Assembly (NCBI RefSeq): GCF_009834535.1
Contig: NC_045717.1
Location: forward strand, 26,474,001-26,538,000
Source: Camelus ferus
Taxonomy: Eukaryota
DNA: 64,000 nt
Direction: 5' to 3'
The notes beneath the pieces were generated by a model. That model was not told the DNA's origin. It saw only the letters and a list, made by a program, of their open reading frames with translations, and did no database searches. A program made the translations under genes and the position numbers. Below are positions 7,201 through 45,300 of the stretch, piece after piece; position 1 is the stretch's first letter, and the number at the start of each line of letters is the position of its first letter.

Positions 7201-10200
7201 GGAGCGATGATGGTGGGGAGAGTGGGGACAGCCCTGGGGCCCTGGAGACACTCATGCATTGTCCTGGGATGATTCCTTCCTCCTGAAGACAGTGAATAAG
7301 CACCTTCTGTGTGCATCATAAGACAATAAACCACCAATAGCAATAATTTCGAGCTCTCTCTCTCCATAGCAGGCTCTGCGACTCCCATTTTCCTCACCTA
7401 GCCTGACGGGCCTCTCAGACCTTTCCCGTGGGGGGCTCTATTATCACTTCATGTCTCAGAGATGAGAAGGGAGGCTCAGAGAGGTTGAGCTACTGTCCAA
7501 AATCACATAGCTAAGTCAGGGCAGAGCTGGGGTTGAACCCCTGGCCGGCTGGCACCCCCACTGCAGGGCCCCCTCTGCTCCCCCAGACGCCACCCCCTCC
7601 AGGGCCTCCTGCTCCTGCTGTGGACCCTTCTCAACTGTGGTTTGGGGGACAACGCTCAGGTAAAGGGGGACATGAATCCAAGGGGCAGTGGACATGGGGA
7701 ACTGGCTGGTGCTGTGGGGGTCACTAGCCTCCCTTCCGAGGCTAACTGTGCCTCTCTCTCCCCAAGTAGGGTTCAGGCGAGTGGACTCCGTGGGGTTCCT
7801 GGAGCCGCTGTTCCAGTTCTTGTGGGCAAGGGCTCTCCATGCGCAGCCGGAGATGCATTCGGTGCGGAGGGCTGGGTGGGACGGGAGGGGGTCCCTACCC
7901 CTCCTCTCCTGCCAGCCCAGCCCAGCCCCTGGCCGCACCCTCGGCCTGCCCACACATGCTACTCCTTTTAATCCAGCTGATTCAGCTGGAATGTGGGTAG
8001 GGTTGGGGGGGTGGATGGATGGGCAGGTTGGCTCTGGGGAAGGGGTTCCTGGAGGTCCTGACCAGGGTCTGGAAGCCCTGATCCTTGTAGGTTTCCCGGG
8101 GAAGAGCTATGCTGGGGGCACACTCACGAGTACCGCCTCTGCCAGTTGCCCGTAAGTTCTACCCGCCTCCAAGACTGAGTCTTCCCTGAAGCCCTCCTGC
8201 CTCCCTACCCCTGCTGCCAAGTATGCTTGCCACCATGCCAGACTTTTTGGGTATCCCCAGGGCCATCCCAGCCTCTGATCCATCCATCTCCATCCCCAGG
8301 ACTGTCCCCTAGGGGCTGTGCCCTTCCGAGACCTCCAGTGTGCCCTCTACAATGGCCACCCTGTCCTGGGCACCCAGAAGACCTACCTGTGGGTGCCCTT
8401 CTATGGAGGTGAGTAGCCTACCTTCCAGTTAGTTGAGAGCTGGCAAGGAAAAGTGGCTGCTAAGAAAGAAGGGGAACTTGGAGGGTTGCAAGAAGGGGGC
8501 ATTAGCACTGGGGCTTTGAAGGATATGTAGGAGTTGGTGAGGTGAAGCAGTGGGGAAAAGCACATGTGAGATGTGAAGCAGGGGCCCAGGGAGGCAGGGT
8601 CTATTATGCACAGGGTCGAACACCGGGGTGAGGATTTACTTGGAGCTGTATCCAGAAGCCAACAGTTTTCAAACTTACCCTAGCAGCAGGAAATGCTGCC
8701 ACACTGAGCTGAAAATAATGAGTTATATAACTTTGTGCCCGGGGCAGTGCACCTCCAGATTTAAGGGAGATAGGCAGTTTCAGACGCCATGGTGGGAGCA
8801 GACACAGATAAGAAAATCCTAGAATGAAGAAAGTTTCCATCATAGATTTTTTTTCGACCTCATGGATTTTTTTTTTTCCCTTCGCCTCAAGAATTGGAGG
8901 AAACTTGTCATGGTCCCACCCCCACAGAGGCCTGTCATGGCCAGCTCGGGTTCCAATCCAGGCAGGGTCTGCCAGCCAGCCTCAGGGATGTGGGAGCCAG
9001 AGAGAGCTTGAGCAGAAGGGAGCAGGGATCGGGGCTGGTGTTCTGTGGGTGTGATCTGACTGTCCACTGCAAGTTAGAGAGGGAAACTGAGTCCCAGGCA
9101 GGGCCAGCAACACACCCGGGCTATGCGGGACTCAGTCAGCACTGGACAAATACTTTTTACGGGGCACCTGCTGGGTGCAGGGCCCAAGTACTGAGTGAGT
9201 TCTGCCCACTGCTATACCCCAGAGCCTAGAACACTGTCTGGAAAATCCTAAGTTCTCAACAAGTGTTTGTGGAATAAGTGTTGTAGAATGAAAGAATGAG
9301 TGAAGGATGGGTGATGATGTTAATAATGGAAACATGTAAGGACCCCCTAATATTAGGACTTAACATGAATGAATGAATGAACAAATGAGTGCAGGCCTAG
9401 ATACTGGCCTGGGAGAGTCCCGCAGAACTGGAAGAAGAATGCCTAAGTTCCAGTCCTGGCTCTGCCTCAGCCTCTGTGTGTGGCTTTGTCTGTCTCTGGG
9501 CGTCATCTGCCCAAAGGGATTGTTGCCTGGGGGAGACTGGCAGGGAGGGGGCTGGAACTCAGATAGCAGTCCCCCGGCCCACCAGCTCCTCCCGCCCCCC
9601 AGCACCCAACCAGTGTGACCTCAACTGCCTGGCAGAGGGGCACGACTTCTATCACAGCTTTGGTCGAGTACTGGACGGTACCCCCTGCAGCCAGGGCTCC
9701 CCAGGGCTCTGCGTGGCTGGCCGCTGTCTGGTGAGGTCTCCAGGCCCAGCCCCGTCCCCGCCCACCTCCATCAGGGCCCCGCCTTTCCCTAGATTTCACC
9801 CTAGGCTCCTTCCTCCAGGCCTCTCCCCCAAGTCCCATTCATTTAGTTCCCGGTCGGGCCTTCTTCACTTGGCCCCACCCCTTAGCAACGCCCCGCCCTC
9901 CCGGCCTCCACCTATCATCACTAGACTCCACCCCCAGCCTCCTCCCACTGGGGCCCGCCCCCAGTCCCATCCTTTCAGTTCTCGGTCCCGCCCTCTTCCA
10001 TGAGCCCCCCTCACCCCTCCACCCTCGCGCTCACAGCGGCCCCGGGCTGGGGGGCGTTTGACCGCGCGCGTGTCCTCCCCACCCCTGTAGAGCGCCGGCT
10101 GTGACGGTTTGCTGGGCTCGGGCGCCCGCGAAGACCGCTGCGGCCGCTGCGGTGGCGCCAACGACTCATGCCTCTTCGTACAGCGCGTGTTCCGTGACGC

Positions 10201-12059: not shown

Positions 12060-12289
12060 GCCCCTAGACCAGGCCTCAGCCACACACCACGAGGAGGACA
12101 TGCCTGGCTAGGCTCAAAGTCAACATACTTCCCCTCTTGGCATAGCTTCCAGGGAGCTTTGGAGTATCTCCCACTTGCAGCTCTGTGACTCCTCATTACA
12201 CCCGCTTCTACTCCTGCACTCAGATCCACTGTTGCAAGCAGGCAGGTACTGATGAGGACACACTGAATTGACTCTTTAACTCATTTCCT

Positions 12290-13480: not shown

Positions 13481-14685
13481 TCAGGAGGGCGGGCCTGGGG
13501 CCCGGGCGCCCCCTGGTGGCAGGACGGGGGAAGAAGGATTGCTCGCTCCCGGTGTTACCCGCAGCCCCCAAGGGCCCTACTGCCCGGGCCTGTTATCCAG
13601 AGGTGGTCCTCTCTGCCTCACTGCAGGGTGAGGGTGTCTCAGGGAATGGGAGTCTCCAGCCTCCTCCTCCCCAGAGCTCTGTGGGTCAGCGCTGCCACCT
13701 ACTCCCCACCAGCTAGACCAGTTGGCCTGGGCGAGGCACCTGCTGGTAGGGAGGCCAGTGCAGGGCCCACTCGGGCAGCAGATGAGATGGCCTGTGGCCA
13801 CAGAGGCCAGGACTCCCCGCAGCCCGGTCTCTGGACGGCCTCTCCTGCCAGTGGCAACATTGTTTCCAGTCGTGATCCTGTAACCCTCCGCAGTAAGCAT
13901 TTCGTTGTTTTTCTGGTTTTCTCTTGAGCTTTAAATAAAAAAATCGACGGAACGATTTAAAGAGAGTAGAAAACACTGTGGTTCTAAAGATTCTCAAATT
14001 CAGCAACGTGCACAGCGAAACTGGCGATCACGCTCGCCCAGCAAAGATACCACGCGGCTTTGATGCTTTAAACAGGAATAAAAACTCCGGACGCTTACAG
14101 GGAATGACGGAAATGGAGTGACTCGAGATCTGCTTCTTCGTGTCTGCACAATCCCCAGCTCTCAGGGTTTTATTATTTACTGTGTCCCTGAAGAGACCGC
14201 AAATGATTACAGATGGGAACGTCCTCTCAAGGGAAGCCCACGCAGCCGAGTCTTCACGCATCTGGAACTGGGAATTCTCTGGACTTCCCAAGGGAGATGA
14301 CGTTTATTAAAGAATGAAGAAGGAAAAGAGGCACGTTGGAAACTTGCGTCCATGTTATTAAGACAAAAGTAATCACACCAGTGGATTCAGCAGCCCCAGG
14401 AACATTTGTGCTCAGCAACATGGCCCTGGGGGGGTCTGATGCTGTTCTTACTGTTTTTAATTCTCTGCACACAGCACCCTCCTGCTGTGTGCTCGTCTCT
14501 CACTGACTCCGTACAAGCTGGCTGACCCACGGGAGGGCACGTGTCCAGTTGAAGGGCTGCTGAACCACCCCATCCAGGCTGTCTCACATCCTGCGGGATC
14601 AGATGAGGGTGTGCAGGTTACAATGGCATAACACCTGGGAAAACAGTTTGGCTGTTTCTGCTACAGCTGAACACACGCTCACGTG

Positions 14686-15105
14686 TAAGGTTGAATAAAC
14701 ACGTCCACGCCCTAACCCCTGGGACCTGTGAACAGGATCTTATTTGGAAAAAGAGTCTTTGCAGATGTTGGTAAGGGTCTCAAAATCACTCTGGATTATC
14801 CAAGTGGGCCCTAAATCCAATGACAGGTGTCCTTGTAAGAGACACGCAGAGGAGAGACCGAGAAGATGGCCATGTGGTGGTGGAGGCAGAGGTCGGAGCA
14901 ATGGGGCCACAAGCCCAGGGATGCTTGGGGCCCCCAGAAGCCGGTGGAGGCAGGAAGGACCCTCCTCTGGAGCCTCTGGAGGGACCACGGCCCTGCCAGC
15001 CCTGGATCTTGGACTTGAGGCCTCCAGATGGTGAGAGAATAAATTTCTATTGTCCCAAGCCTCCCAGTTGGTGGTAATTGGTTAAAGCAGCTCCAGGAGG
15101 CTCAC
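14686..15105 (+). mobile_element. MLT1-type ERVL-MaLR solo LTR
   Basis: TTATTTGGAAAAAGAGTCTTTGCAGATG, GGGCCCTAAATCCAATGACAGGTGTCCTT, GAGAATAAATTTCTATTGT. Confidence 0.85.
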
Positions 15106-15866
15106 ACTCTCACCTGAAACCCTGCAGTCTGACAAGTGAATGCCGAAGGGGAAGGAGAGCACTGCTTACCAAAGACTGGTTCTAGAATGTTCCTAGCAGC
15201 TTTTGTCACAATAGCCCCCAACTCGAAACAACGCTAAGGCCCACCCACAGTGGCACGGGGCACCCTACGGCCTTCCCATAGAATGACATGCTCTCTGCCA
15301 GCGGAAGAGAAGGGCACCAGGGGCCCTGCCCGTGGCAGTGCGGCGAGTCTGAGTCAGACGGGAGAGGGCAGAAAACACCGTGGACGGGATGCAAGTGACC
15401 TTCACGGGTGGGGGGAGGTGTGGATGGGGCTGCCTTTGAGGGTGGGGAGTGACCAGCAGGGCCAGCCCTGATGCGTTACTTGCCTCAAGTCACTGACTAC
15501 GCTTTTCTGTATGTTTAAATTAAAACATGTCTGACGGACTAAAGGTCACTGCCTCCACCTGGTGAGTCAGGCATGTGTCCTTTCACCTGTGTTCCTAGGT
15601 GAGCTGACCCAGGGGTGGGTGGGGCCCTGGGATGGTCTTTGAGGGGCACAGCGGGAGCGGGGCGAGGTCAGGTGCAGAGAGAGCCAGCCCCGGACCAAGG
15701 TCACACCACCATCTTCAAACAGCTGGGGCAGTGATAAGCAGATGCCAAGATCCCTGTCCCCAGTGCCCAGGTGGACTTCCCAGCAGGGTGGGAGCTCATT
15801 AATAATTAGCCTCGATCCCCTCCTTCCAAGAAATCCTACATCCCGGAGTTAAAGCCGAAGTCTTCG

Positions 15867-15987
15867 CTGGCCTAGCGGTCAGGCTCGCTCATGTCAGACC
15901 CCTTGTTTTAAAAACTCTTCTAAGAGAAGCAAGGTAGAGGAAACGGTCCTGCCTCTCCTGTGCTCCCCCAGAAGCGGCAGGTATTTG
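15867..15987 (+). repeat. Left arm of a long inverted repeat
   Basis: 15867-15944 is the exact reverse complement of 17414-17491 (78 bp); similarity continues for about 40 bp more. Confidence 0.95.
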
Positions 15988-17368
15988 CATGGCCCACCCC
16001 CTAGACCCACCTCTCTCACCCTCGCTCACATGGCTCCCGCTACACCAGCCCGCCGATCTTCCTCTAACCCGCCAGGCAAAGTCCTCCTCCTCTGTAGCCG
16101 CCTGGACCACTCCTGCCCTCGTGTTCACAAGACTTGTGCCCTCACTTCCTCCGCATGTCTACTCCGATGTCATTTCCATAGAGAAGCCTTTCTCTGACCC
16201 TGCCTGATGGGGGAGCCCCTGCGCCCCGACTCTCGGCTGCCCATTTCCCCATTACATTCTCTTCCTTCTGACGTGTTATCCGTTTATCGTGTTGATGGTC
16301 ACCCTTCCAAATCCTTAGGAACAGGGATTTTTCTCTCTCTGGATTGTTACTCTACCCTTGGCTCCTGGAGCAAGGCCTGGTATACAGTAGGTGATCAATA
16401 TTGGCTGAGCAATAGGAATGGATGAATTGGACCCCCTGCTTCTAGTAGCACTCAGTGCCTCCTGCTTCCTTATTGGAGTTGACAAGGATGAGGACACAGG
16501 GCTGCAGTGTTGGGAGCGGTGCAAAGCTGCCACCTGTTTAGGAAAACTGTCTGTGATGGACACCACGGGGTCCTCCCAGGCGTGGCTGCTGACTGTCTCG
16601 TGGGAGATTTGTCTTTGGTTGACAGGAGCTACCTCAAGGAGATCCCCGCAGGGTTACAGACCCCTCTTGGGGGTTGGGCTGAAGCCAGTGACCGACAGAT
16701 GTAGGGGCACAAATCTCGGGCCCCTGGGCTCCATTTGGAGCTGGTTCCAGGTGTAGTTCCAGGTCTAGGGCCCTGGCCAAGACCACCTCCTTGCTCAGCT
16801 CCCCCACCCCAGCTTCCGACTGCTTTAGAGGACCTGAATTTGAACAGGGAGGTGTTTTGGATATTTATATCCCGTTGGATTTGATTTGCTCCTGTGCACC
16901 CAGATGTTGCCCCTCTCCACACGGCAGGCCCATCACTGTCCTCACTCGTCCTGTCCCTGCCTGTTTCTGTGATCACTGTCATGCTGGCCTCACACAGGAA
17001 ACCAACTGCAGGTGGTAGGAAGTCCTGGCCATGCCCACCCAGCTTCTCACTCCCCATTTCCAGGAAGGCCAGGCTGATGTCCACAGCCAGCCTCCCAGGG
17101 CCTCTTTGCTGAAGGCTGGCTAGCCCTGCCCCCTGCGCTGCCTGCAGGGGGCGCTGGCTAGGGACCACCAAGGTGGTGGATGAGGCCTTGCTTCCTGAGC
17201 ACCTGGGCAGGCTAAGTCTCAGGTGTGCATTCGATGGGAGTCAGAGCACCAATTGCCCGCAGGTGTGCTGGGCTTGGCCACACCTTCACCGCCTTCCTCC
17301 ATCCCCCTCTATCCCTGCTCCACTCCCTACTGGTGCTTCACAGGGTCTCCTCCTGAGAACTCAAATTC

Positions 17369-17491
17369 CTGCCCGATGCCTGCTTCTGGGGGGAGCGCAG
17401 GTAAGGCAGGACTGTTTCCTCTACCTTGCTTCTCTTAGAAGAGTTTTTAAAACAAGGGGTCTGACATGAGCGAGCCTGACCGCTAGGCCAG
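17369..17491 (-). repeat. Right arm of a long inverted repeat
   Basis: Reverse complement of 15867-15987. Confidence 0.95.
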
Positions 17492-17719
17492 GAGAGGGAG
17501 GAAGCTCAGGGGTGAGGACAAGGATCTCCCGGGCCTGCGGGCATGTCTTGGCCAGTTGGTGAGCCCTCCGTTCTGAGTCCGAGTTTTCTCATCTGCGAAG
17601 TGGTGCTGCGCAGCACCTGCCCCTGGAGGAGGAGACCGAGCCCGCGAAGCCCCTCCCCCGGCCCCCAAAGGACAGACAGCTGGACGAGGTTGGTCCAGAT
17701 GAGCTTTACTGAGTCCTCC

Positions 17720-18492
17720 CTAGCAGGCCAGGTGTTTCAGCCGCCAGCAGTGCTGCAGGTAGTGGAGCCCAGGTCTGTGGTTCCAGCTGCAGCTGGCCTC
17801 CATGGTGGACTCGGAGGAGTACTCCAGGGAGGACTCAGATTGGCAGGAGGCAGGCAGCTCGGGCACTGAGGTGCTGCTGGTGGGCAGTGCTAGGGGCTGC
17901 CTGCTTGGCTTGGAGGCCTTGGGGACTGAGTCCCCTGGCCCATCGGGGGTCTCGTTGGGGGGCTGTGTGGGGATGGTGGTGCCACTGGGAAACTGCACGA
18001 GGGGGACCCCCTGGCTGAAGGAGGTGCTGGGATGCTGCCTGGAGCCTGAGGACCTGTGGGCCATCTGGGAAGGGCCTGAGGAAGTGGTGGACAGTTGGGC
18101 GCGCTGCTGGCCACGGGTCTGAGTCTGGCCAGAGGCCCAGGGCTGGCCGGGGGTCTGAGTCTGGCCGGAGGCCCGGGGCTGGCCGGGGGTCTGAATCTGG
18201 CTGGGGGCCTGGGGCTGGCCAGGGGCCTGGGGCTGGCCAGAGAAGTTGGCTCGAGACCGAAGCCCACCCTGGACCTTGCCAGGCAGGTGGGAGCCACTGA
18301 CAGAGCCAGTGGCTGGGGAGTGAGGCTGGGACTGGCTCAGGCTGGCAGAGGTCCTGGCGGCTGCCTTGCTCGGAGACAAGGGGCTGGTGGAAGACTCTGC
18401 TGGGGACTCAGAGGAAGCCACAGAAGACTTGGGGTGCGATGTGTCCTCCAGCTTACCGGCTGGCAGGTCTTTGCCGGGGCTGGACAGGGACT

Positions 18493-18504
<12 letters not shown>
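17720..18504 (-). CDS. REEP6: Putative alternative terminal coding segment of REEP6 (Ser/Pro/Gln-rich, about 225-260 aa, ending HCWRLKHLAC*)
   Basis: Stop-free frame across the apparent 3' UTR. It is reachable in phase 1 through CAG acceptors opening at 18504 or 18399 and contains a frame-preserving 18-bp tandem repeat. Splicing is not demonstrated. Confidence 0.45.
18105..18240 (-). repeat. 18-bp unit tandem repeat (about 7 copies) encoding GQPQAP/GQTQTP-type hexapeptides
   Basis: CTGGCC recurs every 18 bp; translation GQPQAP GQPQAP SQIQTP GQPRAS GQTQTP GQPWAS GQTQTR. Confidence 0.85.
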
Positions 18505-22708
<4,204 letters not shown>

Positions 22709-42347: not shown

Positions 42348-45300
42348 GCCAGGGAGGGTGCGTCGTCGTCGTCGAAGCAGCCCGAGTCAGAGGCGTAGTC
42401 CTGGGCCAGGCCATCCAGGTGCCGCAGGGGCGGCAGGGGCTTCTTGGAAGAGGCCTCGGCCTCGGCCTCGGGTGGGCCCTGTTTCTCCAGGTGGTCAAGC
42501 GCCTGGGCCAGGTGCCGCGCGTCCAGCTCGGCCTCCAGCGCGCGCTGCTTCCGCACGTACAGGCTGGGCGCGCAGGCGCCGGGGGAGACGGCGGTGGCGG
42601 CCGCCTGGTACTTGGCCGGCCGGTGGGCCAGCAGGTTGCGCAGGGCGGCAGCGCTGCCCATGGCGATCATCTTGTGCTTGGAGTGCACCAGGTTGCGCAG
42701 CATGCCCACGGCGCCCAGGTCCCACAGCAGCTCCTGGTCGCGGGGGCTGCGGGCCGACAGGTTCCACAGCGTGCCACACGCGTTGCTCACGATGGTCAGG
42801 CTGTGCGATGTCAGGTGCTGCAGCAGCGTCTGCAGGCAGTTGTGGTCCCGCAGCACCTGCCTGTGGAGGAGCGGTCAGGCCCCACCCGCTGCCCCGCCCG
42901 GACCGCCCGCATCCCACCAGCAGCGAAAAGGAGGTGCCCAGGTAACTTTGAATTTCAGGAAAGAGATTAAATATTTAGTATATCTCAAATATCAAATGGG
43001 CTGTGCTAAAACTTTTATTTATTAATAGCAATGAAATACTTATTAAATAAAATAATGCTAACATAGCAATAATTCTCTTTTTAAAAAATAATGGTTATCT
43101 TTTAAAGTGAATAGTTCTAGTATATCTCATTTTAATGCACCTAAGCCTTGTGATGTTTGGGGTATGCTAAAGACTGATTTTTGCTTGCTTTAAAAAATAC
43201 TTTTTATTAATTTATTAGCATTATTTAATAAATTGAAAAAAATTTTTTAATTGAAGCATAGTTGACTTTACAATGTTGTGTTAGTTTCTGGTGTAAAGCA
43301 AAGTGACTCAGTTTCACATAATATATATTCTTTTTCATTACAGGTTATTACAAGATATTGAATGTAGTTCCCTGTTGTTTATCTATTTTGTATATAGCAG
43401 TTTGTAGCTGCTAATCCCAGACTCCTAATTTATCCCTTCCCCCTACTTCCCCTTTGGTAACAGTAAGTTTGTTTTCTCTGTGTCTCTGTTTTGTAAGTAA
43501 GTTCATTTGCATCATATTTTAAATTTGGCATATAAGTGGTATCATATAATATCTGTTTTTGTCTGNNNNNNNNNNNNNNNNNNNNNNNNNNNNNNNNNNN
43601 NNNNNNNNNNNNNNNNNNNNNNNNNNNNNNNNNNNNNNNNNNNNNNNNNNNNNNNNNNNNNNNNNNNNNNNNNNNNNNNNNNNNNNNNNNNNNNNNNNNN
43701 NNNNNNNNNNNNNNNNNNNNNNNNNNNNNNNNNNNNNNNNNNNNNNNNNNNNNNNNNNNNTCTTTTCAAATTAGAGTTTTCTCTGGGTGTGTGCCCAGGA
43801 GTGGGATAGCTGGATCATACGGCAAGCCTATTTTTAGTTTTTTAAGGAATCTCCATACTGTTTTCCATAATGGCTGCACGAAACTACACTCCCACCAATA
43901 GTGTAGGAGGGCTCCCTTTTCTCCACACCCTCTCCAGCGTTTATTGTGGATTTTTGAATAATGGTCATTCTGATTGGTGTGAGGTGATGCGTCACTGTGG
44001 CTTTGATTTGCTTTTCTCTGATAATTAGGGATGTTGAGCATCTTTTCACGTGCCTGTTGGCCATCTAGATGTTTTCTTTGGAGAAATGTCTATGTAGGTC
44101 TTCTGCCCGTTTTTTGATTGGGTTGTTTGTTTCTTTGTATTGAGTTGTATGAGCTGTTTGTATATTCTGGAAGTGAAGCCCTTGTCAGTCACACCACTTG
44201 CAAGTATTTTCTTCCAGTCTGTAGGTTGTCTTTTTGTTCTGTTTATGGTTTCCTTTGTTGTTTGTTTTTGCTTTTATTTCTATTGCCTGGGTAGACTGAA
44301 CTAGGAGAACCCTGCTATGATTTATGTCAGAGAATGTTTTGCCTGTGTTCTTGTCTAGATTTATGGTGTCCTGTCTTATGTTTAAGTCTTTAAGCCATTT
44401 TGAGTTTATTTCTGTGTATGGCGTGAGGGAGTGTTCTAACGTCACTGATTTGCATGCAGCTGTCCAGCTTTCCCAGCGCCTCTTGCCAAAGGGATTGTCC
44501 TTTCCCCATTGTATAATCTTGCCTCTTTTGTCAAAGAGTAACTGAGCACAGGTGTGTGGGTTTATTTCTGGGCTCTCTGTTTGGCCCCTTGATCCATAGG
44601 TCTGTTATTGTGCCAACATCATGCTGTTTTGACTCCTGTAACTTTGCAGTATTGTCAGAAGTCTGGGAGGGCTATGCTTCCAGTTTCGTTCTTTTTCCTA
44701 AAAGTATTGTTTTGGCAGTTCTGGGTCTTTTGTGATTCCATATAAATTTTAGGATTATTTGTTTTAGTTTTGTGAAAAATGTCCTGGGTAATTTGATAGA
44801 GATCGCATTAAATCTGTAAGGGTTGCTTTGGGTAGCACGGCCGTTTTACCACTGTTAACGCTTCCAATCCAAGGGCATGGGGTGTCTTCCCATTCCTTTC
44901 AGCCATCTTTAACTCCCTTAGTCAGTGTTCGCCAGGTCTCAGGGTGTGCATCATCTTTCACCTCCTCGGTCAGGCGTGTTCCTAAGTACTTTTTTGATCC
45001 AGTTTTTAAGAGGGATTGTTTCTTTGCTCTCCTTCCCTGCCATTGCACTGTTAGTGTGAAGCGGGGTAGATTTCTGTACGTTGCCTTGCGTCCTGCTGCC
45101 TTGCTGGATTCTTTCAGCGGCTCTAGTCGTTCTTGCGTGGCGCCTTCAGGGCTTTCTGTCTATAGCATCATGTCGTCTGCGTCTAGGGACAGTTCTGCCT
45201 CTTCCCTTCCAGTTTGGACCCCTTCTCTTTCTTCCTCTCGCCTGGTTGCTGTGGCCAGGACTTCCAGCCCTGTGTTGACTAGAAGCGGTGAGAGTGGGCG

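Follow-up and report, generated by a model that had tools for sequence, protein, structure and literature searches.

A perfect inverted repeat between ADAMTSL5 and REEP6 in camels is probably the scar of a templated insertion on the camelid stem

Between the ADAMTSL5 and REEP6 genes, the camel DNA analysed here (the window, 64,000 nt in its entirety) carries two stretches that are exact reverse complements of each other, which raises the question of whether they reflect a mobile element, a structure kept for a function, a recombining locus or an old replication or repair error. A base-by-base register check found 78 consecutive matches between 15867-15944 and 17414-17491, confirming the perfect repeat reported by a preceding sequence-only reading; chance cannot produce an exact match of this length in 64 kb. 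A repeat search of the window extended the inverted pair to 15867-15969 and 17389-17491 (103 nt, 96% complementary, 1419 nt between), and gapped blastn extended it to 15867-15979/80 against 17491-17377 (115 columns, 94.8%). The looser similarity noted earlier past the core indeed reaches 113/115 nt, but the drop in identity at 15944 is not the edge of the copy, which goes on for 35 more nt with six differences and ends at 15979/17377. In full, the left arm comprises 113 nt (15867-15979, + strand, the six differences falling in 15945-15979, among them G at 15945 and T at 15956 and 15961 where the right arm has A, A and C) and the right arm 115 nt (17377-17491, + strand), the two being ~95% identical with mismatches and two 1-nt indels and enclosing a spacer of 1397 nt (15980-17376; 1469 nt from core to core). 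Blastn detected no third copy of the arm in the 64-kb window, where the best other match was 19 nt (E 0.065), nor further copies in the flanks of the seven other loci; the dispersed copies by which the earlier reading would have recognised an ordinary transposon pair were thus not found in the window or the fetched loci.

The repeat is intergenic, as proposed from its position between the two 3′ ends, but its left arm stands ~3.75 kb past the ADAMTSL5 stop and its right arm ~1 kb past the canonical REEP6 stop, the coding sequences ending near 12110 and 18490, respectively, when mapped from the gene tables of related loci. The distance of about 230 bp given before for the right arm is accurate for the stop of a longer, 319-codon ORF on the − strand (17720-18679), with 229 nt separating the arm from 17720-17722. 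In a protein search this ORF matched REEP6 models of alpaca, Camelus ferus, blue whale, red deer, argali, black bear and a phyllostomid bat, and a second search added C. bactrianus. An 18/36-nt tandem repeat of at least five units (18098-18241) lies within the long ORF that reads the REEP6 3′ region in an alternative frame. From 17720 to 14456 the REEP6 strand has neither AATAAA nor ATTAAA, the sole polyadenylation signal being AGTAAA at 17705. Two segments at 16360-16430 and 17560-17600, with a tail reading GCCTGGTATACAGTAGGTGATCAATA and a core reading GTTTTCTCATCTG, are presumably old MIR-like fragments, judged by eye. Two runs of N interrupt the window, at 19499-19670 and 43566-43760.

For comparison we used genomic loci with 10-kb flanks from alpaca, C. 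ferus, C. bactrianus, whale, deer, sheep, bear and bat, the last five serving as outgroups; pig, hippo, llama and dromedary were left out, which limits the sharpness of the ancestral states. Both arms were found in the same places and the same orientation in the window, C. ferus, C. bactrianus and alpaca (four assemblies, three or four camelid species). The arm sequences were identical among the three camel assemblies, and the window was ~0.1-0.15% divergent from both C. ferus and C. bactrianus, which marks it as DNA of an Old World camel. All five outgroups lack the left arm at the orthologous site and have 11 nt (ACCACACCTTC) in its stead. When whale, deer and sheep were aligned to the window, the alignment broke at 15865 and resumed at 15976-15978, with 11-13 nt between. 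In blastn, the spacer matched every outgroup in collinear blocks whose strand and order were unchanged. The right-arm orthologue was collinear over the entire length in whale, where it is split by a cetacean SINE with its own target duplication, and collinear over 17401-17462 in deer and sheep; its identity to whale was 71-77%, and it was barely alignable in ruminants, bear and bat. The whale SINE is tRNA-derived, has a poly-A/T tail and a ~12-nt target duplication (CACAATCCCCTT), and lies in blue whale at 9611-9736 of the reverse complement of locus L003, orthologous to window position ~17455.

Since the outgroups have the spacer but lack the left arm, and whale, deer and sheep also have the right arm, the right arm represents the ancestral sequence (unique, non-coding and downstream of REEP6), the left arm is its backward copy, specific to camelids, and the spacer has kept its orientation. 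Because both arms are common to camel and alpaca, the repeat is older than the split between Camelini and Lamini, which has been placed at 11 My from fossils and at 25 My from mitochondrial genomes (PMC1939714). Differences at arm positions p90, p95 and p101 that are common to both left arms likewise date the copy before that split (positions are numbered from the outer end, p1 being 15867 and its partner 17491). The recent inverted duplication considered by the sequence-only reading was hence an inverted duplication, but not a recent one.

The junctions of the insertion can still be read. In the seven-species alignment the ancestral site consists of AAAGTCCTC, ACCACACCTTC and CAGGGA in succession, and the target can be written as GTCCTC, ACCACACCTTC and CAGG; in camelids the 11 nt of ACCACACCTTC are replaced by a G and the left arm. 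On the outer side, the target is preserved as far as GTCTTC (ancestral GTCCTC), its left edge at 15857-15865 (+ strand) reading AAGTCTTC where the ancestral sequence is AAAGTCCTC. A single G at 15866 (+ strand) follows, and the copy then begins with CTGGCC. In the alignments this G differs both from the A of the ancestral target and from the C of the template. On the inner side the copy closes with AGCAGGCA and the target resumes with CAGG, so that the template end and the target have 2 nt (CA, 15978-15979, + strand) in common when the ancestral state is taken from deer, sheep and bear. With the template ending in GCAGGCA and the target reading CAGGGA, the match would amount to 6 nt only if the ancestral target were whale-like; a 6-7-nt inner microhomology suggested by whale alone was rejected, as deer, sheep and bear have a single CAGG and the whale sequence CAGGCAGG is that species' own change. 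The insertion is flanked by GAAGTCTTCG on one side and GAGAGGGAGG on the other, with no target-site duplication between these flanks and a loss of 11 nt from the target.

These features are consistent with a single event on the camelid stem. A DNA break or a stalled replication fork would have occurred ~3.7 kb downstream of the ADAMTSL5 stop, and eleven nucleotides would have been lost at the target. During gap filling, synthesis would have switched to an opposite-strand template 1.4 kb away, copied there ~115 nt of unique sequence, which lie ~1 kb beyond the REEP6 stop, and then returned. Joining would have left one untemplated G at one junction and used 2 nt of microhomology at the other, and the outcome would be an inverted repeat flanking ancestral DNA that was not itself rearranged. 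Judged by the minimal microhomology and the filler base, end-joining with templated synthesis would fit as well as MMBIR/FoSTeS, and the start may have been either a stalled fork or a repaired double-strand break. Taken together, we read the repeat, with a probability of roughly 0.85, as a fixed mutational scar, namely an inverted templated insertion of the template-switch or MMBIR kind on the camelid stem, followed by near-neutral decay and a probable conversion in Camelus. The account of its origin, taken as a separate part of this reading, is very probably correct.

Inverted templated insertions that adjoin their template and show junctional microhomology have been described (PMC8421209), as have template-switch mutations that made perfect inverted repeats in great apes (PMC7954356). 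The camelid event resembles the MMBIR-linked templated insertions (MMB-TI; PMC8421209) and FoSTeS/MMBIR in that a nearby template of the same chromosome was copied in inverted form, replacing a few target bases with short microhomology at a junction, and the clustering of the copy's mutations near the inner junction could reflect error-prone synthesis. It differs from MMB-TI (PMC8421209) in its template distance (1.4 kb, compared with the 100 bp covered by the search tool, MMBSearch) for a copy of 113 nt, in having 2 nt of microhomology at one junction only with a filler base at the other, and in being an old, fixed germline change rather than a somatic or disease allele. In common with the template switches of the four-point model (PMC7954356), the reverse-complement copy is present in the descendant and not in the outgroups, and a perfect repeat is made that then decays; however, those events span tens to hundreds of nt and are usually hairpins with short loops (PMC7954356), while the camelid loop is 1.4 kb and its arms ~113 nt. 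The template, 1.4 kb from the insertion, lies outside the limits of both schemes, and the event is of a known kind with a longer tract and a more distant template than most of those catalogued. Copying 113 nt over 1.4 kb extends the usual range of size and distance for template-switch insertions. With template, target, lost bases and both junctions still readable, the locus offers a clean, phylogeny-dated case of one replication or repair error making a long perfect repeat, and it cautions against taking perfect repeats for transposons or selected RNA structures.

The perfect identity of the 78-nt cores after so long a time was compared with the background rate. Camel and alpaca differ by substitution at 2.57% of sites around the locus (111/4325), and polarisation by whale assigned 38 of the background changes to the camel branch and 50 to the alpaca branch. 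For both camel cores together (156 nt), 1.7 changes would be expected on the camel branch since the alpaca split, and the probability of seeing none is 0.18; the perfect identity therefore needs no selection, and both the selection for pairing and the ongoing gene conversion invoked earlier to explain it are unneeded. Alpaca points the same way, its arms differing at 12 sites that are evenly spread and without compensatory pairs, so that no sign of selection for pairing is seen. Five left-arm changes are older than the camel/alpaca split: p26, p84 and p95, all CpG to TpG, p90 (A to T) and p101 (one C lost). Seven are specific to alpaca (left arm p10, p20, p32, p44 and p69; right arm p34 and p53), and three are specific to camel (left arm p79 and p109; right arm p89). 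An apparent excess of substitutions in the alpaca arms (9 compared with 3.35 expected) fell to 7 once p26 and p84 were polarised by outgroups and was discarded.

Two of the older sites bear on exchange between the arms. At p26 (15892, + strand, partner 17466), T is present in both left arms and in the camel right arm and C in whale and in the alpaca right arm; at p84 (15950, + strand, partner 17408), the same distribution of T is seen, with C in whale, deer, sheep and the alpaca right arm. Of the ancestral CpGs in the flanks, 4/41 decayed on the camel branch, and at this rate parallel decay giving two or more matching sites among the three candidates has a probability of ~0.007-0.03. One past left-to-right gene conversion in Camelus, covering at least p26-p84, thus appears likely from these two hypermutable CpG sites, which were noticed post hoc, while an independent loss of the same two CpGs from the camel right arm is possible. 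Ongoing conversion aside, the earlier suggestion of arm-to-arm exchange accordingly gains some support for the past. We infer that after the insertion the arms would have decayed roughly neutrally until left-to-right conversion in Camelus re-homogenised their outer part, which would probably account for the perfect 78-mer in camels.

If the arms interacted in the past, they might still do so, and the best-surviving alternative is that they form an active recombination substrate, a crossover in the perfect 78 nt flipping the 1.4-kb spacer to give a polymorphic or somatic inversion. The observation behind this possibility came from transcripts. Exact look-up of a 180-codon ORF on the − strand (16629-17171) returned one Logan contig, L008 (SRR34972880, 1181 nt); ORFs crossing the arm junctions or the right flank had no match in the exact-protein look-up, a protein-cluster look-up found 0/10 ORFs, and a scan of JGI metagenome contigs with a 42-nt arm core gave 0 matches. 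RNA-seq runs with the label 'reproductive system metagenome' contain 0.24-0.54 of the words sampled from 15700-17720, and L008 very probably comes from one of these, run X15: its coverage predicts 0.51-0.55 of the words compared with the 0.54 found in that run. The contig runs through the left flank (15600-15866) and the arm core to 15944 in + sense, and then, joined via the arm core (second part within 16577-17491), through the inner part of the right arm and the spacer backwards from 17413 to 16577, with 0 mismatches and one 1-nt deletion. This junction order is that expected from inversion of the spacer by a crossover in the perfect core, and 81-101-nt words of L008 fit the inverted model and not the reference.

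However, Logan contigs are built at k=31, shorter than the 78-nt core, and L008 itself was so assembled; at this word length the orientations are indistinguishable, the 31-mer sets of the reference and inverted models being identical. In a toy de Bruijn graph (tips clipped to 2.5k), an inverted allele with a single covered block reproduced the contig, and the same 1182-nt contig was obtained from the reference orientation if RNA coverage stopped within ~46 nt of each core. L008 is therefore not diagnostic of orientation, given the identical k=31 sets and a toy graph that yields the contig from either arrangement. Coverage ending in this way would follow from splicing at donor-like + strand sites at 15980/15981 (CAG/GTATTT) and 17400/17401 (CAG/GTAAGG). 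The latter is the donor that the earlier reading had correctly placed at 17398-17406 in the right arm, with the left arm lacking the GT. A further donor-like site lies at 15598/15599 (TAG/GTGAGC), and an acceptor-like + strand site, CCTCCCAG followed by G, at 16579/16580, three bases beyond the end of L008 at 16577. A splice from an exon ending in CAG into CCTCCCAG and its G would make the graph branch where L008 ends. L008 starts (15600) and ends (16577) beside two of these splice-site-like sequences, and the left part of the spacer (15980-16576) is seemingly unrepresented in its RNA run. This suggests that camel reproductive tissue may express a spliced + strand transcript that is unannotated and antisense to REEP6. 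It was the inner junction of the insertion that gave rise to the donor-like site at 15980.

The signs of conversion show that the arms have interacted, but all four assemblies (4/4) carry the ancestral orientation, the inverted order comes from a single contig of a single run, and arms of 78-113 nt would be short for a mammalian homologous crossover. The locus is akin to known inverted-repeat NAHR and conversion between paralogues in its two near-identical inverted arms, in the signs of non-reciprocal exchange at p26 and p84, and in the one RNA contig in inversion order; the known mammalian cases of inversion or conversion have arms of hundreds to thousands of bp, in contrast to ~113 nt here, where inversion is only hinted at. 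We consider active inversion possible but doubtful, with roughly one chance in four in its favour. Still somewhat less likely is the fuller scenario of a 78-113-nt scar that converted in the past and goes on recombining in camels, with a 1.4-kb inversion now segregating or flipping somatically and altering the DNA next to the REEP6 3′ end and a reproductive-tissue antisense transcript. Were the inversion real, it would show inverted repeats this short to be capable of causing structural polymorphism in a mammal.

Retention of the pair for a function appeared far less probable. Under this explanation a read-through RNA would fold into a stem of ~110 bp, provided that one RNA holds both arms, and would be edited, diced, or used to steer splicing or the choice of 3′ end of REEP6 or of an antisense transcript. 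The predicted RNA duplex of the two arms has an energy of −231.6 kcal/mol, RNA-seq coverage extends over both arm regions in at least one tissue (reproductive; L008), and pairing would bury the consensus donor at 17400/17401 in the right arm. The alpaca arms have nevertheless drifted apart at their 12 sites with no compensatory pair, the template is weakly conserved outside camelids (71-77% with whale), and the identity seen in camel stays within the neutral expectation. At the consensus level, this one RNA contig carries no A-to-G differences over the arms, and an Rfam search of 14000-19500 returned chance-level matches alone and no family. Read as a neutral scar, the pair is probably functionless, as argued from the drift in alpaca and the weak conservation of the template.

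The two remaining explanations have next to no claim. That the arms are the terminal inverted repeats of a MITE-like, non-autonomous DNA transposon is suggested by their look, ~110 nt on either side of 1.4 kb, but it is not the whole element that is missing in the outgroups, whale, deer and sheep having spacer and right arm collinear and bear and bat the spacer too, and 11 nt were lost where a target duplication should be; the arms are thus no transposon, which bears out the earlier statement that they match no SINE, LINE, LTR or MITE, and no other copy exists in the 64 kb or the seven other flanking regions. Mis-joins can make perfect inverted repeats, but an assembly artefact, also raised beforehand, is ruled out by the same placement of both arms in alpaca, C. 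ferus and C. bactrianus, in four independent assemblies that include one short-read assembly of 2013 and two chromosome-level ones of 2025, and DNA runs of two organisms contain 0.90-0.96 of the sampled words of the region (ten studies in all when RNA and DNA runs with such words are counted); an inversion with duplicated breakpoints, equally improbable, was rejected on the collinearity of the spacer with the five outgroups.

Just left of the insertion, the TAAT-rich cluster pointed out in the sequence-only reading was found as CATTAATAATTAG at 15797-15809. It lies within TCATTAATAATTAG (15795-15811), a motif with a TAAT/ATTA core of homeodomain type. The motif is nearly unchanged in alpaca, whale, deer and sheep and is retained with one or two changes in bear and bat, the surrounding DNA being ~70-75% identical. 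Lying ~55 nt away from where the copy was inserted, it is a candidate for a conserved regulatory site; it is older than the repeat and unrelated to it.
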